DNA from: Epithemia pelagica
Lineage: Eukaryota; Protista; Bacillariophyta
NCBI GenBank assembly: GCA_946965045.2
Contig: OX337233.1
Span: 992,001 to 1,056,000, forward strand
Direction: 5' to 3'
DNA: 64,000 nucleotides
The first letter of the stretch is position 1; the number at the start of each line of letters is the position of its first letter. Below the pieces are notes generated by a model. The model was not told the origin of the DNA. It ran no database searches and saw nothing but the letters and a program-made list of their open reading frames with translations. This document shows positions 9,281 through 45,533 of the stretch, piece after piece. A program made the translations under genes and the position numbers.

Positions 9281-9489
9281 GTGTATGTCCGTCGTCCGTT
9301 ATTGTATCTCTTAGATAGGGAGTACCATCTCTGCGCCCATTTGGCCCAACAACCGAAAATAATTTTTGGCGGTGCGCCGTGCGCCGTCTAACGTCCAACG
9401 GTCTGTCGTTTTCTCTCATGACATGACGATGATGACATGTGTGGCTACCGTTGTCGTCCCCATATATTCTGCAATACCAATACTGACAC

Positions 9490-11165
9490 TGCAGAACCAA
9501 CCATGGTACAGCCGGGGCTTGTCCTTTGTAGCCAGAGTCGAATGAAACGTGCGGAGGGTGGATTGCGTTGGTTGCATGAATTGGTTGTGCTTGAGGATCG
9601 TCCCAACAACAAGGGACAAACAGACGTGGTGTTGGGAGGAATTCGAGATGGGCCACCAATTCCGTACATGGATTGAATTTGGTAGAACGATACAAGCAGT
9701 TGACCACCCATGAACAAGAGACAAGGGGAGCATGCTGATGTGGCTTGCAACGGAGGAATTTACGTGATTGGACGATTCGATCGTGGTACGATTTGTCGAA
9801 TCCTCTCATCACGTAGACGCCTCCGTTGTAGGGAACGGATTGAAGGGTACGGTTTGGTGCAAGCACCAAGCATCTCCAAGAAGCATTGGACGATTATTAC
9901 TCGTCGAGCGTTGAATCCACCCATTACGACAATGTAGCGATTGGAAACCGCAACAGAATGATGTGCTGTTGCGGTTCTCAATCTTTACATTGTGGTAATT
10001 AGTCAACACTTGACGAGTTGCAGTCCTTCTGCCGTTGGCAGCAGTGGTGGTGGTGAGTGTTGCATCCACCCATTGCGGCAATGTATCGATTGTGAACCGC
10101 ACCAGAATGTTATGCTGTTGCTGTGCACCAGAATGTTGTGCTGTTGCGGTTCACAATCGATACATTGTGGGAATTAGTGGCAGTAACACTCGCCGAATTC
10201 CAGTCTTCCTGCCATTGGCAGTTGTGGTGGCGGATTGTATGGAATGGATTGACGGACACGGTTTGGTGCAATCACCAAGCATCGAGTGGTGCATCCACCC
10301 ATGACGACAATGTATCGATTGCGTGCGCTGTCGCGGTTCGCAATCGATTCATTGTGGTATGGGTGGATGCAACATGAGGGAATTCTCGCATTTGTCGTCG
10401 GCCGAAGCAGTGGACGACTTCCACTTGTCGAGTGTTGTACCCACCCATTACCATAATGTATCGATTGTGAACCGCAACCGAATGTTGTGCAATTGCATTC
10501 TGTTACGTTTCGCAATCGATGCATTGTGGTAATCATTGACAGCAACACTCGACGAGTTGCAGTCATCCTGCCTTTCGTGGTGATGGAGTGTCTTTGAGGG
10601 GAAACCAGTGGTGGAGAACAGTGTGAGCATCGCCAAGAAGCATTGGATGACTGACACTTGTTGAATGTTGCATTCACCCATTACAACAATGTTTCGATCG
10701 CTTTTGCGGTTCGCAATGAAGATCGAAACATTGTTGTAATGGGTGTATGCAACATGAGGGAATTATCGCGTCTGACGTCGGTTGATATCATTGATACCAG
10801 CAATCGGACTTTCATTGCTGGGCCAAGCAATTGATGTGGACAGTTGGGTGAAATCACACAGCATCTCCAAGAAGCATTGGATGACTGACACTTGTCGAGT
10901 GTTGCATCCACCCATTACAACAATGTTTCGATCGCTGTTGCGGTTCGCAATGAAAATCGATACATGGGTGTATGCAACATGAGGGAATCATCGCGTCTGA
11001 GGTCGGTTGATATCATTGATACCAGCAATCGGACTTTCATTGCTGGGCCAAGCAATTGATGTGGACAGTTGGGTGAAATCACACAGCATCTCCAAGAAAG
11101 ATTGGATGACTGACACTTGTCGAGTGTTGCATCCACCCATTACAACAATGCTTCGATCGCTCTGT
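9490..11165 (+). pseudogene. Degenerate, internally reiterated Kelch-repeat gene mosaic containing a hairpin array
   Basis: Clear DNA similarity to the open Kelch gene at 62714 (segments encoding KGQTDVVLGGIRD, ACNGGIYVIG, VDIIDTSN). It carries many frameshifts, a roughly 234-bp tandem repeat (from about 10675 and 10909) and six fold-back stems. Confidence 0.85.
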
Positions 11166-11266
11166 TTCTGGTTTGACACCATCACCAAGTTATAGAATCT
11201 ATCACAGCGAATACTTCGTGTGGATGATCAACCAGTGAGCTATTGTATTGACTACTCTGCACAGAC

Positions 11267-13965
11267 ATGTTGCGAATCTTGCGATCCACCTACAACCAAG
11301 TAGCCACGCAAGAACAAGAGCAACAGCAACAAGGAGGAGATGGAACCATAATGTCTTCCAACCAGAACAACGAGACAGCCACGGCGGCAGCAGCAACGAC
11401 TTTGTCTTCTCCAGACCCTGTAACCACTGCCACCAAGGCGGAGGTCGTTGTGGAGGAGGATGAGACTTTTGTGATTCATAGTGCTACGCCCGTGGCAACC
11501 GTTGTGACGGACCAGGAAGAAGAAGAAGGAGAAATGGTGGAACCCACAGTGGCGGCCGCCAAGTCTGCCACAACAGATCGACCCATTGTGATTCATTGCA
11601 GTGCCACACGATGGACTCTCTTTGTGCTCGTCCTGTTGGTCCTCGTTGCGACAGCCCTGATTGTACCATTGGCACTTATCAAGGGCCATTCCGGCGAGGA
11701 TAACTTTGAACTACCCTACAATCCTCCCTTCAATGAGAACGACAAGGAACATCAAGTGCCCTTGCTTTCCGAACAAGTACTTGGCGGATATGCAACTCCA
11801 GAGGAATTTGAAGCCGACTTGACCAAAGTGGCAAAATCCTATATCAATGGTGTTGTAGGACAACAACTAGGTGTGGATGCCTATTCCTCCTTTGGATTGA
11901 CGGGTATTGCGGCGATCGATATGATGGCTGACGGTGCTCCTACCATGACCATGAGTGCAACTCCTCGGACTGCGGCGGCTCCTCCTCCGAATCATAAAGA
12001 GAGCGTAGGAAATGATGTCAATGACTTTGAAACCAACAATCAGGAAGATGGAGTACACGAAGGAGATCAAGTAGTAACGGATGGAAAGATTGGTAAGAGC
12101 ATTCTATGATAGTGTGCTGGTCTTGGATACTTCTCCCCCATATCTCACTCTGTTGTACTCGTTTTACATACAGCTGTGGCGTCCTATGGTAGTTCTCTGG
12201 TTTGCTAGAATGTGACGGATGGTAAATTGTTGCTCCAACTGTCCCTGACAGATCAAGAATCCAAAGAAGAAGCACAATATATTCGCATTCACACCCTCTT
12301 ACTCCAAGAAAATCAGTTGGTGGTCGTAGTGGGAGGCGTACGACTTCATTCCCGAATTGAAACGTCACGGATTCTCAATTCGTATCGAGAAACTCGACTG
12401 CTCGTCTATGAAATTCAAACTTTTGAGGATAAACCAGGCGTTGAGCTTCGACTCCTGGAAAGCAAGGATATTCATGGGAGCTATCAATCCATTCGATCCA
12501 TTGGTACGAGTGTTCATGTCGTGACGAGCACGACGCTCGACTTTTTCTTTTTTCTCTTTGAGCCCATGGTGCGCTACCGACCCACCTTTGAGGGTTTGGA
12601 TGACGCTGCCTACACCAATCGAGTCCGAGAAGTGGCGACTCAAGAAATGATTCCCACCTTTGTCAAGCTATTGTCACAAGAACTGAGCGAATGCAACGAA
12701 TTGCCACGCATGGTACGGCTCAACCGATGGGCGACCGAAGCCACACCCAAGGCAGCTTCGGGCTTGGAACACTATCTCTACAATATGGGCTTTGCGCAAT
12801 CACTCATGAGCATTTATTCCTTTGATTTGCAAGACGTTCAATCGGGGCAAGGCAAGGCCTTGCAGTGTCTTCGATCGACGGCCACGTTCTTCCCAGCCGC
12901 GCCATGGAGTACCAAGGTGTACGCCGCCAATGACACGTTGGTAGTAGCCACCGAGGGATATGATTATCAAGCCCCCCAGAAACGCTTTGTCCGTTCCACC
13001 TTTCTTGTAGCCTATGATTTGAATGGAGCAGTCTCAACCCCCAAGGCCCTGGGCAATGTACAAGGAAACGTCATGGGTCAGTACTCCTTTCGTGTCGAGG
13101 ATTCCGTCCTACAAGTGGCCACCACAATCCAAGAGCAATGGACCTGGTGGAGACGAGAACCTGCCTGGTTGTTACGGGGGCGTCGACAACTACAAGAACG
13201 ACAAGATGTTGTGTTCACTGTCCCTAAAACCGAGAATTGGGTCATTACCATGGATTTGCAGGGCAAAAAGGGGAGAATGCAAGAAATGGATCGTCTCAAA
13301 TTGGGAAAAGAAGGGGAAGTCTTTACGACGGTGCGATTCTATAAGGACAAGGCCTATGCCGTTACCTTTCTTCGTATGGATCCCTTTTATGTTCTGGACA
13401 CGAGCGATCCATACAACCTCGCGATTGCCGGAGAACTGGACAATATCACAGGATGGAGCAGTTACCTAGAACCCATGAATGACGACAAATCAGCATGTTG
13501 GCCATTGGTCAAGAGGCGGATGAACGAGGAAGAGTCCTGGGCATGTCCATCTCTGTGTTTGATGCCCGTGCGTTGGACAATGTCCGAATTTCCGCCCGGT
13601 TTCTCATTGAAACGAGTTCCAACATTTGGTCCGATTCCGAAGGGTTGCGAAATAAGAATGCGATTCGGTTCAATCCAGAAACGGGACGGCTCATTCTTCC
13701 TCTGCGCGTGTCGGATTACTCCTCGGATCGTTATTTCCGCGGATTTCGAGTATTCATTGTCAAGGTTGACTCGATTGTCGAAGATGTACCGTGTATGGTG
13801 GACCTTTCAGACTTGAACAACAAGCCGTTTTCTTCTGCATTGGAATCCTTGGAACCACGTGCCATGATCATCCAAGGAAGTTTCATGACTACCATGGGAA
13901 GTCATGTGGTGATGAAAGATCTGGACACATGCGTAACAGATTGGCAGCTGAAACTAGGAGAGTGA
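11267..13965 (+). pseudogene. Beta-propeller domain (PF09826-like) membrane-anchored protein, disrupted
   Basis: N-terminal TM helix (WTLFVLVLLVLVATALIVPLALI) and motifs FETNNQEDGVHEGD, QYSFRVEDSVLQVATT, VRFYKDKAYAVTFLRMDPFYVLD, ITGWSSYLEP and AIRF. Intron 12093-12173. In-frame TAG at 12206-12208 and a frameshift near 13490. Confidence 0.75.
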
Positions 13966-14513
13966 ACTACACCAAAAACAATGCGCGCTCTTTTGTCATG
14001 GATGATCGTACGTTCCACATACCTCCAGAAATGTGATGATTGGACTACCAATTCCCTGCAAGAAACTGGTCCTCGCAACTGACCCCATCCTCCACATTAG
14101 GTTATAATACATAGAAAGTGTAAATTTGCTGCACAAGCTGTTCGGTTTTAGAAAGCAAGGCATTCTGAGAAACGCGAAGGCTTTCGAAGTAGAACTATCA
14201 GCAACGAGACTAAAGAAAGAAACTCGAAAGAGAATTATCCAATCAACATTATGGTATTAAGACTTCTTTCGAATGGACTTGCTCTCTCAACTCGCAATGC
14301 TACCACAGACTCCTGCAGCGACGAATCAGTTCCTCCCGACGGATATGGTTGTCCTAGGCATTACGAACGGTACGAGTCCTTGCGTGTACAAGGGTCCTAG
14401 TAAAATAGAATTGGAGATCTCGTCATTCACCACGTCTGGGACAGACGCCCACCAAAACCAAACGGGTGCTTGTGGGCGGTGGTAACACTATAACTACGAG
14501 TACACCGTTATAA

Positions 14514-17500
14514 CTACGATTTCACTCGAATGGACTTCCTCGTGCCACTGGAGGATCCCCTCTGAATTCTGCGAGCCATGGCCAAACATTCATCCAGGAG
14601 GACTCTTGTTTTCTTTGGTACATCAGTTTCTTCCGCGATTGGCTCTCCGGTAAACGGACGAATCATGTCCTTCTTAACTATACGAAGGCCTCCCATCTCA
14701 CCCATAAAGGCCACCAAAACACGGCCCAATGACGCAATCGTCTTACCCAAGTCCACGTCTTTGGTTTTACATTTCTTGGCTGGCCACCATGGCCATTCCT
14801 CCGCCTTTCTCATACAGATTTCGTCTGTAAATGTTACATCGGCCCACACCTCAGAGGGTCCAGTTTCATCTTCCTGCGTTCGACTACGTTTCTTCCCAGC
14901 GCGATTCCTAGTAGCCTCTTTTTCCCAAGTCGACATTGCATCCATGAGAGCATCTTTTCTTCCGTGATCTTTGCGAGTTTCCCTTCGGCAACGTGAGCGA
15001 ATCCAGCAGTCAACGACGAAAGTCTCGAAAAGGTCTTGCAGGATTTCACGAGCTCTATCCAATCGGACCTCGTCGCCTCCTCGCTTCCCCCGAGACAACC
15101 AGTGAGAAGTGCAGCCTCGGCACAAAGAACAGAGACAGTTTCTTCCCCTTTGCCTTCCCCACTGTCATCTTCTTCGTCAGCTTCTTCCATTTCAGGACCC
15201 TCGAAACCCCCATGTGCTTCCAACACACTTATTCCCGCTTGTCGACTCTCGCTAGCGGCATTTGGATGTAGCAGAAGTAGGGCCGCACGAAGTTCTGCAA
15301 CAACGTCTGAGGCATGGGCTTTTCTGGCCAGCGATATCGCTTTCACCAAAAGTTCGCGGACTTTAAGATGTTGTCGGGAAGATGTACTTCTGAGGCGATG
15401 GAGTTCTCTCTTCCAAGCGACATCCAGCTCACGATTCTGTGCATCTCCAGATCCGTCTGTTGACATATTTTCGTCGGCGATTTCGGCATCGCGGCTCATC
15501 ACCGCAACATTTGAAATATCGGCCACCCTCTCTTCGAGCTCCAAAAGTGGTTGCTTCAACGAGTTCGTCACAGACGTTATAGATTGAAGTCCGGCAGCTT
15601 GAGAATTAGGTGTTTCTCCCCCTCGACGCTTCTTGCCACTCGACATCACAGAGTAGGGAGAATCAGAAATACCCGCCTTCGATCCATTGTCAACCTGGTC
15701 TACATTATTCAATGCACTATACCACGAATGAACAGATGTCTCAACCTTTGTGGTCCATGCGTTTCGCTTGTCCTCTGGCCAGGGGGCGACATCCTCGCAA
15801 GCTTCTTCCACGGAGAGTAATTGCGAAACGAGGATCCCAACAATTCCGGAGCCATCAATATTTCCAGACGGAACGAGATTGCTACACGGAAGATGCGAAA
15901 TTGGTCGGCTGGAAGCATGCTTCTCTCGTGATCTTCTTGTTTCCCTTCGATCAATGCCTGTGTCGAAAGAGCGCAGTACCGTCAAGCCAGTCATATCATC
16001 AGTCGATGAAACAGACACAGAAGGTGCGGGTTGCTTCTCAAACTTATCAAGTTCCGATTGTATTCGGGAAAGTTCGTCTTCTGCTTGGTGAGCCAGTCGA
16101 CCGCTGCGTCTATCTTTTTCGTCACATTTCACTTTTGCTACTTCAAGTCTTTTGTAAAGTGCCTCTTTTTCACGTCGGCGGCTTGATTTTTCAGCTTCGT
16201 CTTTCACATCGTCGTGCAAGTATCGTCGCAACGACTGCTGGCCACCTGCGGGGCCCAGCATGGTTTCGTAGAGATCCTGCTCCCGTTTGCCACGGATATC
16301 AAGACTGAGAGTAAACGAATCAAACAAGGATGATGTTTCAATGACATGCCAAGAGCGACGGTGAAATTGGAACTCTTCCGGAACTGCGAGCTCGGTGGTA
16401 TTTGAAGGGTTGCGTAGTTCCTCTACATACAAAACTTCGGGGTCACGGCGAAAGCAGTAAAGGGCGTTGTGGTTTCGATCGTATCCAACTGGTTCAGTTC
16501 GTGCTACAAGTTGACGAATTCCCTTTTCGTAGGCATCATTGGCTTTTTGTTGCATTCGTAACGCCGTCTCATATTCTTTCTTTGTTGCGGTTGGTTTTGG
16601 AGCTCCTGAGACCTCAGTCGCACCGTTTGTACCGTTGCTTTTGCTTGCCTCGTTGGTATCTTTGTCTCCAGAACCCGAAGTTTCTTGCGGCTTTTTTGGT
16701 TTCGCCGGACCTTCATATGCAAGTTTCACTTTTCGAAACTTTGCATCCGCAGCCTTTTTGGCTTTCAACAACTCGTACATTTTGTCCTCACGAAACGCAA
16801 TTTTCTCCGCCATCCCTGGGTAAAATGCTAGTAAATCATCCGTGAGGGCTCGGAGAAGAGCAAACAACTCCTCTGCTGTGAGTGACCATGCCTCCATTCT
16901 ACCGAGTTTTTCATGAGCACGATACAAAACGCTTCGAAAATCCCCTAGATAAGCACCGTATGCATCGGGGAGAGGAAACGGATCCCTGCCACGCGCTTCT
17001 ACGTTGTCATTTGTTTTTGTGGGTGCTGGTGTCATTGGAATGATAGGTTCATCAATTCGGCCAAACAGGTAGGAAAGATCCGTGTTGAGGGGAGGTAAGA
17101 CTGCCGGATCTCTGCTTGATTCTGTACTATAAAACCGTTCGACCGCATCCATGTAAAGATGACACACGTCAGGCCAACTTCCTGGCGTAAGAGCAGGCAA
17201 AAGGTACTTGTTCAGTTCGAATTGCAACAGCTTTTGAGGGTCTTTTCCGAGAGAGGAAGAGCCAGTCTTTCCATCCTCAGGCGCTCGGCACAAGAGTTGC
17301 AAACACGTGACAAATAAATGCGAAATCAGAGGAGGCACCAGTCGGCTTTTCCTGGCATTCCCATTCAAGAGTTCTTCCGTGGAGTAAATCAGATTAGACA
17401 GGGTAAATTCGGGCACAATCAATGACGAACCGGGTTCCTCAACAGACTTGCCGCCTTGTCCCCGTTTTCGTTTAGTCGTGGGGAGAATTTGCTCTGTGGA

Positions 17501-18055
17501 GTCCGTATCTCCAGTGAAATGCACGTCCCCTCGAAAAAAGTAGTACACCTGGAGCAAATCAGAGACCAGTCCATGGCTGCCATGTGCCAGGGCGTCTGAT
17601 TTGCTGTATCGTAGGACATGATCGGATGTTCTGCCCTGACGGCCCGGATCGTTGAGAGGCAGAACCATTTGCCAGAAATAAGGTACTGTCGGACGGGGCA
17701 TGACGTCTGCAGGTGGTTTCACTCCCAATTCCTTATCCTCCTAATGTAACTTGGTGTCTTCCATTGGAAAACGCCGTTTCCGAATACGATCCAGGCGCTC
17801 CTTTTCTTTTCTCTCAGCTTCTTCTTTCTTGAATAGCTGCTGTTCTTTCTTTTGCATTTGAGAACGTACTTTCTGATACTCCTCCGAACTTACGGTCTTC
17901 TCCAGATCGCGAAGCTTTTCTTTGTTGTACTTCACCAATTCCTTGTACGTTTTGGGTACACGCTTCACTTCTTCGTTGGGGCCTTTGTCTCCTCCATCAC
18001 TCTTCTTTGCTCCATTAGATGAGCACCAGATGATCCAAGATCCAAAAAAGGGATA
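14514..18055 (-). pseudogene. DDT/WHIM/WSD + PWWP chromatin protein, 5'-truncated, with in-frame stop and a copy-specific frameshift
   Basis: DDT-like DLLQVYYFF...EFTLSNL, WHIM1 LTAEELFALLRALTDDLL, WSD RTEPVGYDRNHNALYCF and PWWP EWPWWPAKKC. In-frame TAG at 17741-17743. One A is missing near 14955 relative to the other copy. No ATG upstream of the open frame. Confidence 0.75.
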
Positions 18056-18205
18056 CTAAATGAGGTCTGGCTGTCAACCGACCGGCATTGTCTGTCACAA
18101 TTCACCATTCACAATATCACAACAGATCACAACGATCCTCATCGCGTGTGGCCATGTCACTTCTCTCCAAATTGAAAGGCCATCGCCGACGCAAGCAAGG
18201 ATAGC

Positions 18206-19087
18206 ATGCCTAGAGTCGAAGGAAAGCCGAAAGAACAGCGGCAGCACGGTAGTTTGGGGGACAAAGTGTCTTCACATGATAAGTTGCCCCAAAGGAATCG
18301 AGGCCGACATGGAGCTCGAAACAACAACAAAACGAAAGATTTTGTAAAATGGCTTCAACATACATTTCCTCAAGTATTTTCAAACAACTCAAACGATAGC
18401 GACTGTCCTCCAATCCTTGACGTGGCTGGAGGTGGTAAAGGAGAATTAGCCACACGTCTGGCTTGGTGCCTCCAACGTCGTGTCATTATTGTTGATCCTC
18501 GACCCACCGACGTGGTTGTATGTCTTCAGAAACATGTAATCCCCCAACTTCCGAAAAAGTGGCAAGCTCGGGCGACTTTGCACATGGAAGAAGCGGAGAG
18601 TACTGGTACTAAGCCTTTTCAAAGGATGGAACAATTGGTGCAACAGCACCAGTTGTACTTTACAAGTGAAAGCACTCTACCAGGGATGAAAGCAAAACCA
18701 AATCTTATTTCTGCAATTGAAGAAAGCTGTTTGATCGTTGGAATGCATGCTGACAGTGCTACGGAAGCTATTGTTGACGCCGCTTTGCACTACAAAAAGC
18801 CCTTTGTTGTCGTACCCTGCTGCGTTTTCCCTAATATATTCAACTTTCGCACGGTTCTTGTGGAAGAGTCTGAAGAGGGTGAAAAGTTCTTCCCAATTTT
18901 GAGGTCGAAGGGATACACTGACGACTCAAATGAAGCAGTATCCGGATCACCAACGGCAATGCGACGGGTCAAAGTTAGATCATATGAGGAGTTCTGTGAA
19001 TACATTCTGTCGAAAGATGAGCGGTTTAATTGTTCTACACTTCCCTTTCAAGGCCGAAACTTGGCCATATGGTGGGATGGTTGTTGA
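18206..19087 (+). CDS. Class I SAM-dependent methyltransferase-like protein
   Basis: Motif I-like ILDVAGGGKGEL, VDPRP, and VGMHADSATEAIVDAAL...KPFVVVPCCVFP. The 293-aa ORF is intact and has an identical protein in the second arm. Confidence 0.65.
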   Translation: MPRVEGKPKEQRQHGSLGDKVSSHDKLPQRNRGRHGARNNNKTKDFVKWLQHTFPQVFSNNSNDSDCPPILDVAGGGKGELATRLAWCLQRRVIIVDPRPTDVVVCLQKHVIPQLPKKWQARATLHMEEAESTGTKPFQRMEQLVQQHQLYFTSESTLPGMKAKPNLISAIEESCLIVGMHADSATEAIVDAALHYKKPFVVVPCCVFPNIFNFRTVLVEESEEGEKFFPILRSKGYTDDSNEAVSGSPTAMRRVKVRSYEEFCEYILSKDERFNCSTLPFQGRNLAIWWDGC

Positions 19088-19370
19088 CACAGCGAATGGT
19101 CTTCCGGTAAACATGGACGATCACCTCCTGTCCGACCAACCGTCGCTATCGCTGCAAACTGCAAAAGTCACCAGAGTATCCAAAGTAGCTTCTGCGAATC
19201 ATGTCTAACATGTCTTGTTCTTCGCTGCCTGCGGGGACCTCATGGGACTTCAGTTGCCTTGATAGGGATCTAGGAATGCCTTAGAAAGCGAATCTTCATT
19301 GCAGTAAAGAGTAGTGCCTTGTAGGGACGTTTGGTTATTTGAACACTCAAGGGAATTGAGCATCGCTGTC

Positions 19371-21695
19371 CTACATACACGGCGAAGCGATGAGCGTGCT
19401 TCCTCGATAAACTTCCTTGGTCGGCATAACGAGGGTAAACACTCGTTCGTCAAAAACTTGGCCTCGAAAATGCTGATTTTCGGGTTGCAAAGGTTCCGTG
19501 CCTGCGACCTGATAATTGATGATGGCAAAACTGGAGTCTCCAATATTGTAGTAGACGTCACCGTCAGTATTTGGATAGAATCGTGAAATGTGCTCATCAA
19601 GACTCCTCCTATCCGTTGCATTATTGGCTGAAGTGAGAACACACTCAATATAACTATCGATTGTTGAGTTGAAGTAGAGGTCTGGCTTTCTTGCTGCAGT
19701 CCCCGCATTGATGAGCTTGGGGTTGAACAGTCGAGTGTCGAGTTGTTTAACTTTGGAGAGGCCAAGCAAGAGCTCAAACGTCATAGCGTCTTCGATTGGA
19801 CCTCCATGAGGTCCATACTGGTCCCAGTTAAGCTTTGGAAGGGTGTGAGAAAGCAGTTGCTGCACACCAGCAATGCCATGGTTCAGCTTGGTAGCCAACA
19901 AAGTTCCTTTTCCTCCTTGATGCGACACGAAATTCTCAAAGAGAAATTGTGAAACGATCATGCCATTGCTATCGCAAAATCCTTTCTTTCGAAGATCAGC
20001 GACAGCACGATCATCGGGGTCTCTGTAGAGTAATGGGCGAACGTCGGTAGCAGTAACATCCGGCAGGATGCGTTGAACCATTTCTTGGAATGCCTGTTGA
20101 CCTCGAAAGTCGTTCGACTCAAAATATCTGATCACCTCCTCCACCGAGAAGCCTTCGTTTTTCATCTTCGGAACAAGATGCTCTGCAAGCCACATTAATG
20201 GGTAGATGTGTCCACCAACATGCGAGCGGATGAATTGAAGAAGCTTTTCAATCTCAGCTCCTGTTGCAGCCGTGGTGTTGGACGCAAAATAGTCTGTTAT
20301 CCCCTCCTCAACAAGCATATCTTCGGCAACAAAAAGCCGATCAGTTGCAATTGATTTCTTGAACGACCCACTTATTGTTTGATAGTGGGGAACCCCAGCA
20401 CCGATTGTCGTGAGACGGTGATTTTTTGTATTCTTCAAAAGCACGGTAAATATGTCCGAGTCAACATTGGCTTGTGTCTCGTCGACCAGAATGTACGCTT
20501 CTTGTTTCACCGCTGCCATTCTCCTAATCCATTCATTCACATCTAGTTGCTGAAACGATGTTGCGTTTTCAAAGAAAAAAACTGTTTTGCCATTGCTGAC
20601 CAGCAGCTCTCCAATCTGGTTCAGCACCGTGCTTTTCCCTGCACCCTTGCACCCGCTAATGTGCACAGACTTCTTCGGGGAGGCGTATTGGATTATTTCC
20701 TCAAGAAGATCACGCCGCTGTACAACAAGAGGTCCATATCCAACATCTTCGAACGTTTCGTTGGTCTGCTGCGGCGTGAAAGCGTAGATAGATTCCTTGG
20801 CTTTTGCCATTTGTAACGATTTTCGTCTCTTGTTTCGTTCCTTTTCCTTCCAAGAGGCGGTTACCTTGTAGCTGCATCGGACCTTTTCAAAACGTCCCTG
20901 TGCTGTACCGGTCTTAATCGCCTGGTTGATACAATGTTTGAAATGCTTGGAATCCTCCAAATGATCGTACTCTGCCAAAAGCCACTTCTTAATGGCAGGA
21001 ATGCTGCTACCGGTCCGATCCTTCAGGGCCACAATGGCCTCTTGCACTAGTTGTGCATAGGTTTTGCCATTGCTTCCAATGCTCTGCCGCTTTCCCCCGC
21101 TAGAAACAGAAGGTTGTGGAGTCGGTGGACTTTTGGGTGCCTCCTTATCACCCGAACCACTCTTTTCTGCCACGGCCACAGCAGCGGTAGCAGCATTCTT
21201 GGACGAATTATCTTCTGCGGATTGATTGGCGTCAGCACTAGCATGTGGTGGCGCCTTGGAAGCAGATTTCCTTTTCTTTTTATCGGGACGAGAAAAAGTC
21301 GGAAGCCACTCGAAGGACGACTTAACTTTGGGGCTGCGTCCAGACTTGCGAGAAGCCGGTGTCTGCGGAGAATAAAGACAGAGCATCAGACCATTGGAGA
21401 CAAACAATATACCAAACATGTCTACAACCAATGCAAAAGCTGATCATGCGTTCCCTCTGTCACAAGGAGAGCTTCCCGACATGGTAGTTGGGAGAAAGAA
21501 CGTATAGGCATTGCCTCAATCAACAAGGAGCAACCGATTCGTCACTTCAAAAGTGTGTGGCCTCCCCCGCGGCGGCGAACCGAAACTACCACACACACTA
21601 CGGAGGCCACGAAGTGACGATCGTTGGACAGAGTTTCGTCCCACCAGGACAGATATTCGACTTACCTGAGATGCTTCTTTCGATTTCGATGACAT
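19371..21695 (-). CDS. Chimeric gene: linker-histone H15 domain fused in frame to a Crinkler-like P-loop NTPase + restriction-endonuclease-fold domain; exons 21695-21666 and 21362-19371
   Basis: Exon 1 encodes MSSKSKEASQ then gtaagt; the acceptor is ...ttctccgcag at 21363. H15 globular domain: TYAQLVQEAIVALKDRTGSSIPAIKKW...RFEKVRCSYKV. The fusion point at 20794/20795 is the duplication breakpoint. Downstream motifs are ISGCKGAGKS, ILVDE and PDLYFNS...IEC...EHISRF. The spliced product is about 673 aa with no stops. Confidence 0.8.
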
Positions 21696-27874: not shown

Positions 27875-28590
27875 GGGCTGGTCTTATCGTGCGTGAAATT
27901 TCACACATTTCACCCAAAACCAGCTTCCAAATGTCACAGTTTTTAGGGTGTGAAAAACTTGGGTCCAATCGATGGCTACGAGTGTGAAATCGATTTCACA
28001 CAGCCGTAGTCTTCCCCCAAGGGTCATTCATGTGCTTCCAACAACCAAACAAATAAGCATGATCTATTCCAAGTACCTAGAGGCAGAGGCAATGGAAGAA
28101 GAAGGTGACGAAGAAGACTTCCTCCACTTACTCAAGCTGATAGAATTTTATTCCCTTGCCAAGAAGCACCGAAGAAGCAGAAGCCCAATCCCTCGGTCCC
28201 AAACTCCTAAGGTTGAACGACTCAAGTGGTCGACCAGGTTCAGAGAGTCTAGTCCCTGTAAATACTCAGGTAATGGCTTCTCTACTCGCTTGGGCTTCTT
28301 CTTAGCAGGGCCATCCTCCTGAGGTGCGGTGGACAACGGCGTCATGGTGGCAATAATTGTTTAATTGTTGCGGAGGGGCTAAGAACGTCTTCATGTACTG
28401 GGGGGAAATTACACCTAGTAACCACCTAGTAACCATAGACGAAGTGTGAAATTTTTGTGAAACTGCAATGGGGGGCCTCAAATTGCCTCGTGTGAATTTC
28501 ACAAAAATTTCACACTCGGCCTGTGCAACGTCAGGACACGTAGGCCAAAAGTGTGAAATGTGTGAAATTTCACGCCGATAAGACCAACCC
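27875..28590. mobile_element. PIF/Harbinger-type non-autonomous element (716 bp)
   Basis: Terminal inverted repeats of about 40 bp (ggg(c/t)tggtcttatcg(t)gcgtgaaatttcacacatttcac) flanked by a 3-bp TSD TCA (27872-27874 and 28591-28593). It has subterminal GTGTGAAAT palindromes and internal ORF remnants. Confidence 0.8.
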
Positions 28591-28916: not shown

Positions 28917-29192
28917 TGTTGGATCACTAGATTGGCCCAAATGGGGTCTCCTGTGCACAGAAGTAATACAGTTGTAAGCGTAGATGAAAGGTTTGCAAAA
29001 TGTTCAATCTTAAAAGAGTGAGAGTTACGACTAGAGTAATGTCCAAGATGGGAGTTGTTGTTGTGCCAGTTGTGATCGTAATCGTCCAAGATCTAGGTGA
29101 GCTATAACCGCCTCCCATGCGGTTTCTATCCCAAAGATCATATGTGCGACCGACTCATGACATGAAGAGCGATTCAATTCTTGATTCCAACA
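28917..29192 (-). repeat. 3' LTR of Copia element 1
   Basis: tgttggatcactag...gattccaaca; preceded on the element strand by a short purine tract aggcaggg. Confidence 0.95.
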
Positions 29193-29506
29193 CCCTGCCT
29201 AATTGTGTCGCTCGAATGTCATTGATGTCATAAATTTGATATTCTCATGTTTGTCGTGTGTGGTGAAGATTTCATATTCTGTGAGTTGTGCCAATGTGAG
29301 AAGAAGATACCCTGCCTGATTTGGATGATGTTTGAATGCGATGTAAGTGATTGTTTGATGTTGTTGTTGTTGTTGATTTGTTTTGTTTCTTTGATTCTTG
29401 ATATTCTGATGATTTGTTGTTCGTTGTTGATATGGGCATTATGGGTTCTGTCGTGTGTTTGATGATGGCGGTTTCACTATGGTGTGGTGCGGATGATTGG
29501 GCTTGG

Positions 29507-32500
29507 TCAATTGGATGGTGCTTGTCGAAGAAAGCATTGAATCCAATAGGGAATTGGACCTTGGTGAGCGATCAGGGCGGTTTCGGATCCGACAATGGGT
29601 TCAACGTGAGCGCCGTGCTCGTTCATGGCCATCGAAGAAGGATCATCGTCAGCGGTGGAACTGGGATCAATGTCAGAACAATAGACAAGGGAATGGCGCT
29701 TGAAGTCAGGACCAGAAAGATTCTTGGTGAAGAGGTCTGCGCTATTGTCAGGTGAGTGAACCCAAATGGTGTGAATCAATCCATCTTCTTTCATCTCACG
29801 GAGAAAATGCCACTTGACGTCGATATGGCGTGTGCGTCCTCCAACACTCCATGAATGTGTCAAAGCCAGTGCTCCTTTGCAGTCCATTTGGAGGATCATC
29901 GGTTTCTTCACGGTAAGGCCCATTTGTTCGATAACACGCATTCCAAGAAGCATTCGCTGACCCGTTTCCACTGCTGCTACGATTTCTGCTTCGCTGACTG
30001 ACAACGTGACGCAATCCTGCATTCGACTCGATTCGGAGATTGGAGCATCTTGGAGAAAGACGGAAATGCCAGACACGCTGTGCCGCTTCTCAGGATCCTT
30101 GGCAAAGTCTGAGTCGCTGACACCACGAATCTCGAATTCGAAACCATCGCGAGATCCATCCCAACAACCAACCGGACGCAGAGTCTTGCTGCGAGTCGAC
30201 GTGTCCATGCAGAAACGCATGACACGGTACATGGCCTTCAAATGATTCGTGGTAGCCTGCTTCATAAACTTGGACAATTCACGGACGGAATTCAGAATGT
30301 CAGGCCTTGTCCACTTCATCAAATGCAACAATTTTCCAACTCCACTGCGATAGAGAGACTGCTTGGTACTGTCCAGATTGGGAGTGCCATCGTCCTTGCG
30401 AAGAACCTCACCAGGTGCTGCCGGTGTGGAATAGGGCTGCGGTGCATGAGGGACAGAAAACTCGTCGGTGAAACTCCGGAGTAAAACCGGCTGAGTGAAC
30501 TTGCACGAGCGGGCTTCACGGTCGATATCGACCTTGCATCCAATGTATTCGGTGAGAACACCACAATCATCACAGTCAAAGTGTTCCTTCATGGCGGCCT
30601 TTGAATGTAACACGCCTGCCTCCGATCCACAGATCAAGAAATCGTCGACCCAAGACAACCAGATGACGAGGCCATAAACGGTCCACGCAAAGTACAGACA
30701 GGGATCAGCACGGTTCCGAAGGAATCCAATCAACTGCATGACTTCCTGCACTTTGTTCCAAAAGGCACGAGCTGCCTGTTTAGTACCGTAGAGTGTCTTG
30801 CCCAAGAGAATCAACCAACCTGGTGGATACTTGGATTCCATTCCTTTGGGAATGGTCATCCACATCTTTCTGTCTTTTTCAAAACCACCCAACAAGAAAG
30901 CACCCTTGACATCCATCACATGAACGACCCAATTCGCGAGAATAATCAGCACAAAGATGATCATGATGGTCATTTCAGATGCTACGGGAGCGAAAGTGGC
31001 GTGGCTGTCGTAATGCTCACCGTCAACTTGTTCGTAACCACGGGCATTCAATCGAGCACGAAAGGTCCCATTGGCCTTCTTTTTCATTGCCCAGACGTTG
31101 CTGAGGATCTTGGCGTCAGCAGGAACATCAACTGGAGAGCAAGGGATGAAGACACCGTTGTCAATCATCCGCTGATAGTCCTTCTCAATAGACTCTAACC
31201 ATTGGTCACGCTCAGGGCCATTAATAGCTTCCTCATACTTCAGAACATGTAGTTCCTTGGTATTCTGGATGCCACCTCCCAAACCGGCTCCAACCATAGC
31301 ACATTCTTTGGCCAAGTCTGTGGAATTTGCGCTATAGCCTGATGGGACACTGTCGACAGGAAACTTGGGAGCCACATAATCTGGATCAATGTCGGCTTGA
31401 ATGAAGGCACCACTGATATCAGAAAGGGGATAATCGACGGAAACTTCTTGAAATCCGGAGCGAATGTCAGTGACTTGGGGTTCAGGGACGTTGTCTTGAT
31501 CGTCATGGTGATGACTAGAGTCGCTAAAGTCAGAATCTTCGTGACCAAGAGAAGACATAGTATGGTAGTAATTTTGTTCGGCGCGACTGAGAGATAATTG
31601 CTGGAAATTGATGCCAGCACATGCATATTCCTCGATCAATCGTCTTGGTGGTCGAATGTGTCGTCCTGTGCGAGTGACTTGCTCGCGACGAGGAGTTGCA
31701 GATGTGAGGACACTAACATTATCGTCGGCATCAGTCGCTTGATCGATTGTCTCCACGGTTGGACGTTCAATTTCCATGGGTTCATGTGCAATTGCTTCGG
31801 GTTCGTCCTTGGAGTCTGGTTGGGGATTTTCCGGATTCTCGTCGGGGATCATTTCGATAAATGGAGCAGCGTCATCAATTAAGGGCAAGTCATCGCAATC
31901 TGCATAAGTACTTGGATCTACGACTGGGCTGACCATTAGATGAGGTACCGAAGGAGGAGGAACAAAATACATGCGTCGAAGCCAAACGACATCACGAGTC
32001 AAATAGATCATTTTGGTTGTAGGATTGAACATGCGATAAACATCGCCAGCATGATCTTTACAATAGCCCACGAATAGACAGTGAGCACCTCTGTCGTTGA
32101 GCTTCTTCGAAGTGTCCGTTGAAATCTTGACGGTTCCAGCTTCGCCCCATGTACGAAGGTGATGGGCAAACTTCGGCAATTGTCCACACCAATGCTCACG
32201 TGTCTGAGAGACACCATCAATCTTGATTACAATCAGACCGTCCAACAATGTTGCAGTGTCGAAGGCAGTCGTCCACAGAAGGTTTCGATACTCCAAAGGT
32301 AGGTTAGCTCGATGCATCATAGCTCGTCCTCGCATAGCAATGGTAGAGATGCTAACTTCCGCTAGGGAGTTTTGCTGGGGAGTATTACGCGCGGTGAATT
32401 CGAACTCGATTCCCAACTTCCATGCGACTGACTGTGCTCGTGATTGAAGTAAGATGTTCTCGCCGGCGTTGTCAAGGCGGACATGTGTTACACCCAATCC

Positions 32501-33868
32501 ATTAGTAGCCCAACGTTGAAACAATTTGCAGACGGGTTCGACCATTGCATTCTTCGAGGAATGGAAAGAGGAGAATTTCAATTGGGTCTTTCCGTGCACA
32601 ATCATGCACCACTGGTACTTCTTGGGATACGGCATCGATGGTGTGCGTCGAACCGAACTCATGTCAAGATACACACGATTCACGGTGGACTCCTCGCTTG
32701 GATCATATTCGTCGTCAAGTTTGGATTTGGATTTGGATCGAGGAAAGTTCTTGCGACGTGCTTTCCCAGCTGCACAAGCAGCGCATTGATCCATGGTGGT
32801 GGTTTCAAGAGTCATGCCAAGGTGTTCAACTATCGATTTGAGTTGATGTTGGCCGATATGTCCGAGACGATCATGAGCTTGCTGTAGGGACAAAATGGGG
32901 CGTTTCTTCGGTGGCATGTTGGTGACAGCGCCGACAATTTCGTGTGGAGAGCTTGAAGGTTGACGTCGTAAGTAAAGGCAAAAGATCATTCCTTCTGGTG
33001 TGGGAATTACAATATCGAACGTTACACTGACATTGTCTTTGCTGATGACGATGGCTTCAGATGAACCGGACAGATTCCAGCCTTGCTTGAGCATTTTAGA
33101 GATACTGAAAAGGTTGAAAGCTGCTGACGGTAATAAATTCACTCCAGTGAGTCTCGCTGGTCCGACTTCTTGTCCGTGCTTGTCATAGCAGAGTCCGGGT
33201 AATTCACCAATCAACGAGGGAGTCTCCGTTGTGTCATTTGCCATGACAAGGCCAACTGGATCGACGGGCTTGACGAGATTGATCATGCCTTCAGCATGGC
33301 TGGTCACGTGCTGAGTAGCACCAGTATCAGCAATCCAAATGTTGGGATCACGCAACAAATGAAGGTCTGGTGGAAATTCGATTCCGCTGAGCAATGCTTC
33401 AACTCGCGGACCAGAGTTGGATTGATTGGTCGTATTGGACGCAACAACAGTCGCAATATCAGGTGTGGGAGCAATTTGGACTGGAGGTGCAGACTGTGTT
33501 GGAGGGTGTTGGAGCTTGTGGTGCTTGTGGTGCTGGTTGTCGACGGCTAGTCCAATTCGGAGGGCGCAAATGTGCGTTCTGAGGATTCTCCCAACAGCGA
33601 TTGGTTGAATGACCGTAAACCTTACAGTCTTCGCAGTATGGACGTGGTCGATTGGGATCGTACGGACGTTGATACTGTCCACCACCATGTGTTGGCGGAC
33701 AATATGATTGCTGTGGTGTAGCAAGAGCAGTGCCTTGATTCTGTTGGTTCTGTTGTTGTTGGCACAAAAGGCATTGGTAGTACCCATGGCCTGGTTCCTG
33801 ACAGAAGTTGCATACGACTTGAGGATTCGGAGGTTCACCAGAGCCAACAGCTTGGCAAACAGGGACAT
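29507..33868 (-). CDS. pol: Copia pol: protease, GAG-pre-integrase, integrase, reverse transcriptase, RNase H
   Basis: Protease WIADTGATQH; HDRLGH...CAAC; integrase YLD...RLDNAGE...NSLAE; RT RARLNARG, MDVKGAFL, LYGTKQAA, DPCLY, SWVDD; RNase H SDSDFA...EAE...MDC...HID...ADLFTK. The functional pol portion starts near 33500. Confidence 0.95.
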   Translation of the reverse strand: MSLFAKLLALVNLRILKSYATSVRNQAMGTTNAFCANNNRTNRIKALLLLHHSNHIVRQHMVVDSINVRTIPIDHVHTAKTVRFTVIQPIAVGRILRTHICALRIGLAVDNQHHKHHKLQHPPTQSAPPVQIAPTPDIATVVASNTTNQSNSGPRVEALLSGIEFPPDLHLLRDPNIWIADTGATQHVTSHAEGMINLVKPVDPVGLVMANDTTETPSLIGELPGLCYDKHGQEVGPARLTGVNLLPSAAFNLFSISKMLKQGWNLSGSSEAIVISKDNVSVTFDIVIPTPEGMIFCLYLRRQPSSSPHEIVGAVTNMPPKKRPILSLQQAHDRLGHIGQHQLKSIVEHLGMTLETTTMDQCAACAAGKARRKNFPRSKSKSKLDDEYDPSEESTVNRVYLDMSSVRRTPSMPYPKKYQWCMIVHGKTQLKFSSFHSSKNAMVEPVCKLFQRWATNGLGVTHVRLDNAGENILLQSRAQSVAWKLGIEFEFTARNTPQQNSLAEVSISTIAMRGRAMMHRANLPLEYRNLLWTTAFDTATLLDGLIVIKIDGVSQTREHWCGQLPKFAHHLRTWGEAGTVKISTDTSKKLNDRGAHCLFVGYCKDHAGDVYRMFNPTTKMIYLTRDVVWLRRMYFVPPPSVPHLMVSPVVDPSTYADCDDLPLIDDAAPFIEMIPDENPENPQPDSKDEPEAIAHEPMEIERPTVETIDQATDADDNVSVLTSATPRREQVTRTGRHIRPPRRLIEEYACAGINFQQLSLSRAEQNYYHTMSSLGHEDSDFSDSSHHHDDQDNVPEPQVTDIRSGFQEVSVDYPLSDISGAFIQADIDPDYVAPKFPVDSVPSGYSANSTDLAKECAMVGAGLGGGIQNTKELHVLKYEEAINGPERDQWLESIEKDYQRMIDNGVFIPCSPVDVPADAKILSNVWAMKKKANGTFRARLNARGYEQVDGEHYDSHATFAPVASEMTIMIIFVLIILANWVVHVMDVKGAFLLGGFEKDRKMWMTIPKGMESKYPPGWLILLGKTLYGTKQAARAFWNKVQEVMQLIGFLRNRADPCLYFAWTVYGLVIWLSWVDDFLICGSEAGVLHSKAAMKEHFDCDDCGVLTEYIGCKVDIDREARSCKFTQPVLLRSFTDEFSVPHAPQPYSTPAAPGEVLRKDDGTPNLDSTKQSLYRSGVGKLLHLMKWTRPDILNSVRELSKFMKQATTNHLKAMYRVMRFCMDTSTRSKTLRPVGCWDGSRDGFEFEIRGVSDSDFAKDPEKRHSVSGISVFLQDAPISESSRMQDCVTLSVSEAEIVAAVETGQRMLLGMRVIEQMGLTVKKPMILQMDCKGALALTHSWSVGGRTRHIDVKWHFLREMKEDGLIHTIWVHSPDNSADLFTKNLSGPDFKRHSLVYCSDIDPSSTADDDPSSMAMNEHGAHVEPIVGSETALIAHQGPIPYWIQCFLRQAPSN

Positions 33869-34598
33869 TCTTGACAGCAGGAGTCACCTGAAGCGACAAT
33901 CCACCACTGTCGATGCTCGATTCGGTCACATCTTCACCGTCGTCATCTTCATCATGATGCAAGTTCCATTGAGTCATCATTGCATCGATCAAGTCATCGG
34001 CAGTGACTTGACTTCCTTTCGCACGTTGTTCAGCAGCAACAATCGTGCTATAGATCGGAGCAGCCTTCTCGATGACAATGGCGACAAGATCGTCGTCTCC
34101 CAATTCATGACTGTGTCTGTTTTCAATCTGTGAAATCTTCTTACAAAGAATCTTGGGGTTCATGGTGTCCGTCATATTGATCTTGTTGATGTCTTGCCGA
34201 ATTCGCGTTTTGGCCGCGATATTCTCACTTGTATAATTGCGAAGCAACCCCTTGATAATGATGTGCGCTTGTCCTCCAGGCCAATCGCTTGTAATGGACT
34301 TCATGACGAGCTTGAGGTCGTCATCGGCTTGGAGAGCCATACTCAAACACGATACCGCCATTGCATTTCGATGTAATGCCTTCTTCTGTTTCTTTCCTGA
34401 ATCGGTGGTATCATCAATGACTGCGTCTTCTGTTCCCGGCAGATCAGGATCAGGAGTATCAGACATAGCTTGGATAAAGTTATATACGCGTGCATGCAAA
34501 CGAAAGCGCATCCACCAAATGGGATAGTCGGCCTTTTTGCCTGAGAAGGATGGAACCTTGACTGCCGTTGCTGTCTTGTCTCCGTTTGTGGTTTCCAT
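33459..34598 (-). CDS. gag: Copia gag with two CCHC zinc knuckles
   Basis: VPSFSGKKADYPIWWMRF, CNFCQEPGHGYYQC and CEDCKVYGHSTNRC. It is in a different frame from pol. Confidence 0.92.
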   Translation of the reverse strand: METTNGDKTATAVKVPSFSGKKADYPIWWMRFRLHARVYNFIQAMSDTPDPDLPGTEDAVIDDTTDSGKKQKKALHRNAMAVSCLSMALQADDDLKLVMKSITSDWPGGQAHIIIKGLLRNYTSENIAAKTRIRQDINKINMTDTMNPKILCKKISQIENRHSHELGDDDLVAIVIEKAAPIYSTIVAAEQRAKGSQVTADDLIDAMMTQWNLHHDEDDDGEDVTESSIDSGGLSLQVTPAVKNVPVCQAVGSGEPPNPQVVCNFCQEPGHGYYQCLLCQQQQNQQNQGTALATPQQSYCPPTHGGGQYQRPYDPNRPRPYCEDCKVYGHSTNRCWENPQNAHLRPPNWTSRRQPAPQAPQAPTPSNTVCTSSPNCSHT

Positions 34599-34824
34599 GA
34601 TGATGAGATTGATAGATGATTTGGAGTTAGACAAGATGGATAACAACACAACAATACACGATCAACGATCCCAAACCTTTGCGGTAATGGTCGTTCTGTC
34701 CCGATTTTGATTCAACAATCCAAGGTTTCGACTCAGTTCCTTGATTCTTCTTGTTCCCGTGAGCTTCGTTTCTCTCTCTCTTGTAACAAAGGACCAATAG
34801 AGCAACCGCCGATACTAGCTAGTG

Positions 34825-35100
34825 TGTTGGATCACTAGATTGGCCCAAATGGGGTCTCCTGTGCACAGAAGTAATACAGTTGTAAGCGTAGATGAAAGGT
34901 TTGCAAAATGTTCAATCTTAAAAGAGTGAGAGTTACGACTAGAGTAATGTCCAAGATGGGAGTTGTTGTTGTGCCAGTTGTGATCGTAATCGTCCAAGAT
35001 CTAGGTGAGCTATTACCGCCTCCCATGCGGTTTCTATCCCAAAGATCATATGTGCGACCGACTCATGACATGAAGAGCGATTCAATTCTTGATTCCAACA
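34825..35100 (-). repeat. 5' LTR of Copia element 1
   Basis: Identical to 28917-29192 except gctatTacc versus gctatAacc. Confidence 0.95.
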
Positions 35101-35777
35101 CATGATGGCGTGAACATACATTAGAGTTGCTGTTTTGCTATCAATACACTGTGTAGCTACTACTGTGATGTGTATTGTGTACCAATAGGTGTCCAAACAA
35201 TGTAAGATAAGAGCCATATAGTCCCTTTGAGTTGCTTCGTTCGAAATGGCAAGACGTCGCTTCCGTACCTGTGCCACGAGGCATGGCGCCTATGAGTCTG
35301 ATGCATAATAGCCTTAACCTTTAAATTTTGGTGATGCCGATGCATCCTACACTATTGGTTTGAGGTCTATGACTGGGAAGACAGGTTTGAAGAGTCCAAA
35401 TAGGTGCACAACAACCTGTGCAACACCATGGTCCGTGTTGTCATCGTGGTGGAGGAAATGAGATATGCCGGCCGACTGGAAACAGGTTATTTTTGGCAAA
35501 TAGGTATGGGGGTGGCTCAGAGAAATTACACCCTATAAGCCACCCCCGCTAGGGGGTAACCATCTCTTCCCTTTCGCTCACAAAACAGACACCATTCAGA
35601 ATTGTGGATATTGATTGCTGCAAAGAGTCAAAACTCTGTGACACGAAACCATCATCCCTTGTCCTATTTTGTTGCTTCAGACCATACCCAGTCATCATTC
35701 ATCCTTCTCGTGAGACGATCGACATCAACCACATTGCTTCATAAAATTGAAACTTGGTCATCAGCCATACATACAAG

Positions 35778-37328
35778 ATGAATGCACTTTCCATTGCCTC
35801 TCGTCGACGTGCGCTTGCTCGTCGAGCCACATGTACATCCGTTCAGCACACGACCGTTCGTGGTCTGTCCAGCCAACAAGGACACGATGCGGCAGGTCGA
35901 CTGAAATCTATCTACGCTTTCACGCCGCAGCAGACCAACGAAACGTTCGAAGATGTTGGATATGGACCTCTTGTTGTACAGCGGCGTGATCTTCTTGAGG
36001 AAATAATCCAATACGCCTCCCCGAAGAAGTCTGTGCACATTAGCGGGTGCAAGGGTGCAGGGAAAAGCACGGTGCTGAACCAGATTGGAGAGCTGCTGGT
36101 CAGCAATGGCAAAACAGTTTTTTTCTTTGAAAACGCAACATCGTTTCAGCAACTAGATGTGAATGAATGGATTAGGAGAATGGCAGCGGTGAAACAAGAA
36201 GCGTACATTCTGGTCGACGAGACACAAGCCAATGTTGACTCGGACATATTTACCGTGCTTTTGAAGAATACAAAAAATCACCGTCTCACGACAATCGGTG
36301 CTGGGGTTCCCCACTATCAAACAATAAGTGGGTCGTTCAAGAAATCAATTGCAACTGATCGGCTTTTTGTTGCCGAAGATATGCTTGTTGAGGAGGGGAT
36401 AACAGACTATTTTGCGTCCAACACCACGGCTGCAACAGGAGCTGAGATTGAAAAGCTTCTTCAATTCATCCGCTCGCATGTTGGTGGACACATCTACCCA
36501 TTAATGTGGCTTGCAGAGCATCTTGTTCCGAAGATGAAAAACGAAGGCTTCTCGGTGGAGGAGGTGATCAGATACTTTGAGTCGAACGACTTTCGAGGTC
36601 AACAGGCATTCCAAGAAATGGTTCAACGCATCCTGCCGGATGTTACTGCTACCGACGTTCGCCCATTACTCTACAGAGACCCCGATGATCGTGCTGTCGC
36701 TGATCTTCGAAAGAAAGGATTTTGCGATAGCAATGGCATGATCGTTTCACAATTTCTCTTTGAGAATTTCGTGTCGCATCAAGGAGGAAAAGGAACTTTG
36801 TTGGCTACCAAGCTGAACCATGGCATTGCTGGTGTGCAGCAACTGCTTTCTCACACCCTTCCAAAGCTTAACCGGGACCAGTATGGACCTCATGGAGGTC
36901 CAATCGAAGACGCTATGACGTTTGAGCTCTTGCTTGGCCTCTCCAAAGTTAAACAACTCGACACTCGACTGTTCAACCCCAAGCTCATCAATACGGGGAC
37001 TGCAGCAAGAAAGCCAGACCTCTACTTCAACTCAACAATCGATAGTTATATTGAGTGTGTTCTCACTTCAGCCAATAATGCAACGGAGAGGAGGAGTCTT
37101 GATGAGCACATTTCACGATTCTATCCAAATACTGACGGTGACGTCTACTACAATATTGGAGACTCCAGTTTTGCCATCATCAATTATCAGGTCGCAGGCA
37201 CGGAACCTTTGCAACCCGAAAATCAGCATTTTCGAGGCCAAGTTTTTGACGAACGAGTGTTTACCCTCGTTATGCCGACCAAGGAAGTTTATCGAGGAAG
37301 CACGCTCATCGCTTCGCCGTGTATGTAG
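35778..37328 (+). CDS. Crinkler-like P-loop NTPase + PD-(D/E)xK-fold protein with its native N-terminus (parent of the chimera)
   Basis: 516-aa ORF. Arg-rich N-terminus MNALSIASRRRALARRATCTSVQHTTVRGLSS, Walker A GCKGAGKS, Walker B ILVDE, and C-terminal PDLYFNSTIDSYIEC...LDEHISRF...G.VYY resembling the CRN DFYI...IEL...EH..RF...G.Y signature. The family call is from motif memory, not a search. Confidence 0.7.
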   Translation: MNALSIASRRRALARRATCTSVQHTTVRGLSSQQGHDAAGRLKSIYAFTPQQTNETFEDVGYGPLVVQRRDLLEEIIQYASPKKSVHISGCKGAGKSTVLNQIGELLVSNGKTVFFFENATSFQQLDVNEWIRRMAAVKQEAYILVDETQANVDSDIFTVLLKNTKNHRLTTIGAGVPHYQTISGSFKKSIATDRLFVAEDMLVEEGITDYFASNTTAATGAEIEKLLQFIRSHVGGHIYPLMWLAEHLVPKMKNEGFSVEEVIRYFESNDFRGQQAFQEMVQRILPDVTATDVRPLLYRDPDDRAVADLRKKGFCDSNGMIVSQFLFENFVSHQGGKGTLLATKLNHGIAGVQQLLSHTLPKLNRDQYGPHGGPIEDAMTFELLLGLSKVKQLDTRLFNPKLINTGTAARKPDLYFNSTIDSYIECVLTSANNATERRSLDEHISRFYPNTDGDVYYNIGDSSFAIINYQVAGTEPLQPENQHFRGQVFDERVFTLVMPTKEVYRGSTLIASPCM

Positions 37329-37611
37329 GACAGCGATGCTCAATTCCCTTGAGTGTTCAAATAACCAAACGTCCCTACAAGGCACTACTCTTTACTGCAA
37401 TGAAGATTCGCTTTCTAAGGCATTCCTAGATCCCTATCAAGGCAACTGAAGTCCCATGAGGTCCCCGCAGGCAGCGAAGAACAAGACATGTTAGACATGA
37501 TTCGCAGAAGCTACTTTGGATACTCTGGTGACTTTTGCAGTTTGCAGCGATAGCGACGGTTGGTCGGACAGGAGGTGATCGTCCATGTTTACCGGAAGAC
37601 CATTCGCTGTG

Positions 37612-45432: not shown

Positions 45433-45533
45433 GTCTGTGCAGAGTAGTCAATACAATAGCTCACTGGTTGATCATCCACACGAAGTATTCGCTGTGATAG
45501 ATTCTATAACTTGGTGATGGTGTCAAACCAGAA

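Follow-up and report, generated by a model that had tools for sequence, protein, structure and literature searches.

Plant miRNA genes have been founded by inverted duplications of the genes that they target, and the hpRNAs of Drosophila are comparable. RNAi genes are present in diatoms, although, to our knowledge, no miRNA has been accepted in them. Hairpins can also be made at the DNA level. A template switch can build a whole stem in one step, as described for quasi-palindrome hairpins (Monttinen and Loytynoja, 2022; PMC8794818) and for de novo miRNA stems (Monttinen, Frilander and Loytynoja, 2023; PMC10710096), and the same process homogenises and expands the arms of inverted repeats (PMC13100816; PMC8604942). 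Palindromes with a short spacer are fragile, recombinogenic sites (reviewed in PMC7999016). Here, we describe a locus of the diatom Epithemia pelagica in which short hairpins made of Kelch coding sequence are packed into dead Kelch gene copies. The window analyzed is a stretch of 64,000 nt, C6:992001-1056000, in a genome of 60.5 Mb in 23 contigs; positions without a contig name are those of the window, and the stems and gene copies given below lie on the plus strand unless stated otherwise.

The locus most resembles the template-switch hairpins. As in those, a reverse-complement replacement in one step would account for a stem of about 40-50 nt with near-perfect pairing, relatives still show the parent state, and later re-templating can change both arms together. 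It differs in that the Kelch event would have struck a coding sequence, in a family of hundreds of copies, and in that the product has been amplified into a tandem array. Template-switch hairpins as such are already known, and what is new is a well-resolved Kelch case. Like the founders of plant miRNA genes and the Drosophila hpRNAs, the Kelch stem is derived from a possible target and has an antisense arm complementary to the family, and like multi-hairpin hpRNA loci, it forms an array of repeated hairpins. Unlike the stems of hpRNAs, which extend over hundreds of bp, its arms measure 34-97 nt; unlike both plant miRNA and hpRNA loci, it has stems in which we detected no selection on pairing. 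The likeness to fragile palindromes (PMC7999016) lies in hairpin loops that coincide with rearrangement breakpoints, in an adjoining large inverted duplication and in central deletions that widen the loops. Snap-back palindromic amplification would leave the hairpin in the centre of the inverted duplication, whereas here it is found at the outer end.

A repeat search of the window revealed direct and inverted repeats packed densely at 9900-11160. All of the six stems that the first-pass annotation had placed between 9923 and 10975 were recovered, with coordinates exact or within a few bases, and the four outlying stems that it had placed at 56-61 kb are present and fold and behave like those of the array. 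Its arm lengths hold only in part, being too short for H1, H2, H4 and the copy at 56785-56912, and a half stem, H7, is to be added to the six. The anatomy, which is directly visible in the DNA, falls into two classes. The gene-embedded class has arms of 37-45 nt and comprises H3 (arms 10287-10323 / 10339-10374, total 10287-10374), H5 (10665-10708 / 10712-10755; 44 nt, 89% complementary), the damaged H6 (10900-10935, with the sense arm near 10955-10979 deleted), and copies at 56548 (arms 56548-56585 / 56610-56647, total 56548-56647), at 59672 (59672-59708 / 59724-59759) and at 61471 (61471-61515 / 61538-61580). The extended-palindrome class has arms of 53-97 nt, which extend into the upstream flank on their outer side and toward the loop on their inner side. 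To this class belong H1 (arms 9899-9956 / 9966-10018, 58/53 nt, total 9899-10018), of which the inner part, 9923-9956 / 9966-9999, is 34 nt long and 85% complementary; H2 (arms 10029-10121 / 10125-10221, 93/97 nt, total 10029-10221), with a perfect core at 10079-10105 / 10141-10167 inside 10052-10121 / 10125-10194 and a 26-nt tandem repeat at its tip; H4 (arms 10412-10484 / 10496-10568, 73/73 nt, total 10412-10568); and the copy with arms 56785-56843 / 56855-56912 (59/58 nt, total 56785-56912). Since arm boundaries vary among copies, the arms have apparently been re-copied more than once. H5, H6 and H7 are held in a tandem array of a 225-nt unit at 10626-11161 (2.3 copies, 93% match), in which the seventh unit, H7 (11125-11160), has the antisense arm alone. 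A truncated unit of the H5 type at 56278-56393, 97% identical, retains only the sense arm and the downstream coding piece.

As RNA, the stems fold with minimum free energies of -35.6 to -85 kcal/mol and z scores of -3.45 to -11.68 relative to dinucleotide shuffles (200 per stem, 0/200 of which matched any real stem). Folds with DNA parameters are likewise strong, with z scores of -5.6 to -13.4.

Matches to the open gene of the window agree with the earlier claim that each right arm is a Kelch coding segment and each left arm its antisense. This gene, which bears no hairpin, starts at 62714 and runs to the window edge at 64000, with its stop at 64030 just beyond; its product of 438 aa is a Kelch propeller (Pfam Kelch_1, E 5.6e-18). 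Sense arms are 75-95% identical to the segment ECCAVAVRNRYIVVMGGYNMR (63161-63225), which encodes the Kelch scaffold RNRYIVVMGG, and antisense arms are 84-93% identical over 36-48 nt to its reverse complement, the match on the open gene spanning 63171-63218. A Kelch pseudogene head at 9484-9999, covering aa 1 to about 164 by blastn and tblastn, leads into the array, its portion 9484-9794 corresponding to aa 1-115. In the array, each unit follows the order aa 116-145, antisense arm, loop and sense arm, and then continues into one of two pieces, the downstream coding piece (aa 169-194) or an inverted copy of the upstream one. The hairpins at 59672 and 61471 are carried by a Kelch pseudogene at 59272-60020 and by a pseudogene fragment at 61205-61689, respectively. 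The sequence upstream of the open gene has almost nothing in common with that upstream of the pseudogene. An ORF at 60171-60923 (plus strand) with weak AAA-ATPase matches lies between Kelch pseudogene fragments.

The family behind these copies is large. A six-frame search of the genome gave 916 first-look candidates, and all of the 98 that were scored had E values below 1e-108; most of them are open, and most are located close to the ends of contigs. Examples of clusters are C9 3.07-3.57 Mb, C8 3.53-3.77 Mb, C13 3.08-3.26 Mb, C17 2.77-3.16 Mb and C6 0.02-0.38 Mb. The open gene of the window is an outlier, with at most 61% identity to other members and a position far from the contig-end clusters.

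Is the hairpin an old feature of the family or a derived one? The first-pass annotation had advised counting the stem genome-wide, and a gapped two-arm pattern run over the 60.5-Mb genome found the Kelch hairpin at this locus and nowhere else; here, the hairpins sit only in dead Kelch copies. The parent state is observed directly. Neither the open gene nor any of the 14 intact paralogs that we examined on other contigs has the antisense arm. In the 12 of these that were aligned, coding sequence continues uninterrupted at the hairpin site, with the consensus HWTTLTCRLST..CCAVAV..RYIVVMGG, and the open gene has normal coding sequence there too, in a region that is unstructured as RNA (z +0.5 to +1.0). 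The remaining two paralogs, on C3 and C9, are also without the hairpin; candidates that minus-strand matches had suggested on these contigs proved to be normal intact genes with no inverted repeats. The pattern search also caught non-Kelch, self-palindromic sites of the ATCGAT type on C5, C9 and C10, where the self-palindromic word TGTATCGATACA occurs in closely spaced clusters (C5:2352392-2352428, C9:2536750-2537310 and C10:1088648-1089433).

How did a reverse complement of Kelch coding sequence come to stand within that coding sequence? These comparisons give good support to the view that the stems originated in the inverted duplication of a Kelch segment, the simplest form of which would be a template switch. 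Such a switch was modelled for four hairpin copies by coordinate descent, with the open gene as a stand-in for the parent. A solution with a single switch is found for each: the parent is retained to about 63126-63143 and resumed at about 63148-63162, and in between stands an insert of 42-47 nt, the reverse complement of 63176/7-63218/23, in place of 12-29 nt. With one switch, the parent-to-child alignment score rises from 78 to 119, 61 to 101, 22 to 62 and 38 to 91 in the four copies, a gain of 40-53, and gaps fall from 23-32 to 3-8. The source of the antisense arm on the open gene would accordingly be 63176-63223. Normal Kelch members have a weak quasi-palindrome at the hairpin site, where the CRLS codons partly pair with the NRYIV codons, and a pre-existing quasi-palindrome is the kind of seed where template switches occur.

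Rearrangement breakpoints coincide with some of the hairpins. As assembled, the window contains an inverted duplication of 10.8 kb (left arm 9957-20794, partner 35905-46744, spacer 15.1 kb), the two arms of which are near-identical and differ by small indels. The first-pass annotation had described a mirrored array at 45.7-46.7 kb; the copy is present, on the minus strand at 45538-46744, with H2 to H7 and only the loop and sense arm of H1, but it is the end of this duplication and not a separate array. Three rearrangement breakpoints lie in loops. The first, at 9956/9957 in the loop of H1, is the outer end of the 10.8-kb inverted duplication; the second, at about 11161, is where the tandem array stops, in the H7 loop just past the antisense arm; and the third, at 56278 within an H5-type loop, is where the truncated unit begins. 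As loops make up roughly a tenth of a unit, it is unlikely, by estimate rather than by a computed test, that all three fell there by chance.

Inverted duplication has occurred more than once in these dead genes. An independent hairpin of a second type at 9748-9828 (arms 9748-9780 / 9796-9828; RNA MFE -51, z -7.65) contains in 9796-9828 a 27-nt insertion, the reverse complement of the neighbouring coding segment for CNGGIYVIG; neither the open gene nor the copies at 59 kb and 61 kb have this insertion. A third type, borne by the pseudogene at 59272-60020 (59795-59832 / 59863-59900), is a pair of 38 nt, 92% complementary, from a third Kelch coding segment. Of eight listed short-range inverted repeats in the 64-kb window that are 26 nt or longer, seven fall in Kelch fragments, and in 14 other Kelch loci (about 42 kb), two such repeats were found, neither of them inside coding sequence. 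A 49-nt inverted repeat at about 2768787-2768894 of C17, 90% complementary with a 10-nt spacer, is situated upstream of an intact Kelch gene. The sole listed non-Kelch repeat of the window (28434-28462 / 28497-28525; 29 nt, 86% complementary) is directly upstream of an LTR-flanked element. This element, at 28917-35101, has identical 277-nt direct repeats (28917-29193 / 34825-35101) and a long ORF at 29507-33868; another, at 48281-53245, has identical 300-nt direct repeats (48281-48580 / 52946-53245) and a long ORF at 49022-52441. Both ORFs are on the minus strand, and the two elements resemble young LTR retrotransposons.

Breakpoints in loops, together with inverted duplications that arose repeatedly and independently, point to a process at the DNA level. 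We infer the replication mechanism as follows. A short-range template switch during DNA synthesis in one Kelch copy would have swapped about 12-29 nt for the reverse complement of the next 42-47 nt (the RNRYIVVMGG strand), thereby destroying the reading frame and forming the hairpin. The dead copy would then have multiplied locally via tandem duplication, in the 225-nt unit, and segmental duplication. Its palindromes may have acted as unstable, recombinogenic sites, where arms were re-templated and lengthened outward and inward, loops were widened through central deletions and copies were cut short in loops. The 10.8-kb inverted duplication would have arisen with its end in a loop, and two more inverted duplications in the same dead genes.

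If the stems served as RNA, their pairing might be expected to be preserved. The ten stems have 90 non-Watson-Crick positions, namely 24 G-U on the plus strand, 17 G-U on the minus strand and 49 transversion mismatches, and the G-U mismatches have no strand bias (binomial p 0.35). In the 36-nt core, an arm is usually nearer to the same-side arms of other copies, or to the open gene, than to its own partner, from which it differs in most copies at 6-9 of about 35 positions. Exceptions are the H5 lineage, which has 2/36 differences and a T-to-A change common to both arms, the 56548 copy, with an A-to-G change common to both arms, and H2, a third case with a covarying position in both arms; these covarying sites are expected equally from re-templating of arms. 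Identity between copies is 0.78-0.92 in the antisense arm and about the same, 0.73-0.94, in the upstream, non-coding-like flank. Taken together, the G-U positions, the grouping of arms and the flank identities do not suggest that either the pairing or the antisense sequence has been preserved, in what is a small sample of loci that, if young, need not show such signs. On balance, the stems appear to be DNA-level products, neutral by-products rather than designed RNA genes, and we infer that they have no selected RNA function.

Several other readings are to be weighed against this one. The first-pass annotation took the array for a candidate hairpin-RNA or proto-miRNA locus aimed at its own gene family, and much of what this presupposes is present, namely an inverted duplication derived from the target, RNAi genes and targets. 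Domain searches of this genome are in line with its statement on Dicer and Argonaute: they found a Dicer-like protein (C4, about 1.022 Mb) that has two RNase III domains and matches Dicer dimerisation weakly, an Argonaute-like (Piwi-domain) gene (C6, about 1.493 Mb) and at least five RdRP loci. The hairpins could be transcribed, from pseudogene promoters or within a neighbouring transcript, and diced, so that antisense products pair with Kelch mRNAs; the effect could be that of a selected regulator or of an incidental silencing trigger. The array lies about 100 nt upstream of the ORF at 11267-12109 and therefore may well be transcribed. The stem geometry suits Dicer: H2, H3, H5 and the 56548 copy have runs of at least 20 pairs with few mismatches, as in a miRNA-type duplex of about 21 nt. 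The 21-nt arm word GAAACATTGTTGTAATGGGTG has 167 genomic sites at no more than two mismatches (its reversed control has 0), so products of the antisense arm would pair with well over a hundred Kelch members. Template-switch hairpins have been turned into miRNAs in primates (PMC10710096), and in another diatom, Phaeodactylum tricornutum, as cited in PMC4247016, inverted-repeat transgenes silence genes (PMC2724275). The existence of RNAi genes and the abundance of near-perfect target sites also count against the by-product reading, as do the three covarying sites, which fit selection for pairing as well, and the occurrence of three independent Kelch-coding hairpins, two of them from conserved scaffold motifs, which could mean selected, family-directed RNAs. 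Yet no G-U or strand bias is seen, and neither the stems nor the antisense arm show excess conservation. Weak matches to Rfam models of miRNA precursors exist, but no stem reaches a gathering score (best 47.5 bits against a gathering score of 98), and the models matched are those of unrelated plant and animal precursors, on both strands, which reflects shape and not kinship. Moreover, canonical miRNAs were not detectable in P. tricornutum (PMC4247016). We therefore regard dicing of the hairpins as doubtful. That the array is expressed and yields siRNAs against the scaffold segment common to hundreds of Kelch genes, as a family-wide RNAi control, is improbable.

The remaining alternatives do without a small RNA. 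The inverted repeats might be DNA-level protein-binding or promoter elements for the gene downstream (ORF 11267-12109), given that the array ends about 100 nt before it, that array and gene have been duplicated as one arrangement, and that inverted repeats in yeast promoters have been expanded by template switching (PMC13100816). The same hairpins, however, occur in the pseudogene fragments at 56-61 kb without such a neighbour, and the arms are plain coding sequence in decay, so a promoter role is very unlikely. The next ORF after this gene, at 12212-13816 (plus strand), matches Pfam Beta_propel (PF09826; E 1.1e-42) and has been duplicated together with the array in the 10.8-kb copy. Artefacts of assembly or sequencing come to mind because the two arms of the 10.8-kb inverted duplication are almost 100% identical, as a mis-assembly might be, and because the one other public contig returned by a look-up for a neighbouring gene, identical at 100% over 8385 nt, in all likelihood belongs to the same assembly. 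An artefact would not yield diverged copies, and the hairpin exists in about a dozen of them, which are spread over several sites and each carry substitutions and deletions of their own; between the arms of the large duplication lies a unique 15-kb spacer. For the short hairpins, the artefact reading is rejected on these grounds as scarcely credible. A foldback or MITE-like mobile element would explain the shape, which recalls terminal inverted repeats, and the presence of several copies, but it would not be expected to have arms of Kelch coding sequence that keep register with the flanking gene, or copies limited to one locus under the two-arm pattern in the 60.5-Mb genome. Neither target-site duplications nor dispersed insertions were seen, and the mobile-element reading, the least plausible of those considered, is rejected as well.

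In the by-product reading that we favour, the present role of the stems is most likely none; they would be by-products and at the same time drivers of local DNA instability. The locus would then be a clear case in nature of a hairpin made by a single template switch in a dead paralog, and of what such a hairpin goes on to cause: amplification in tandem, extension of the arms, breakage centred on loops and a large inverted duplication. This may be of use in understanding genome instability within gene-family clusters. If, on the other hand, the stems are expressed and diced, the array would count as a hairpin RNA locus derived from its own targets, in a lineage in which no canonical miRNAs are known, and its near-perfect complementarity to well over a hundred Kelch members would gain regulatory interest.
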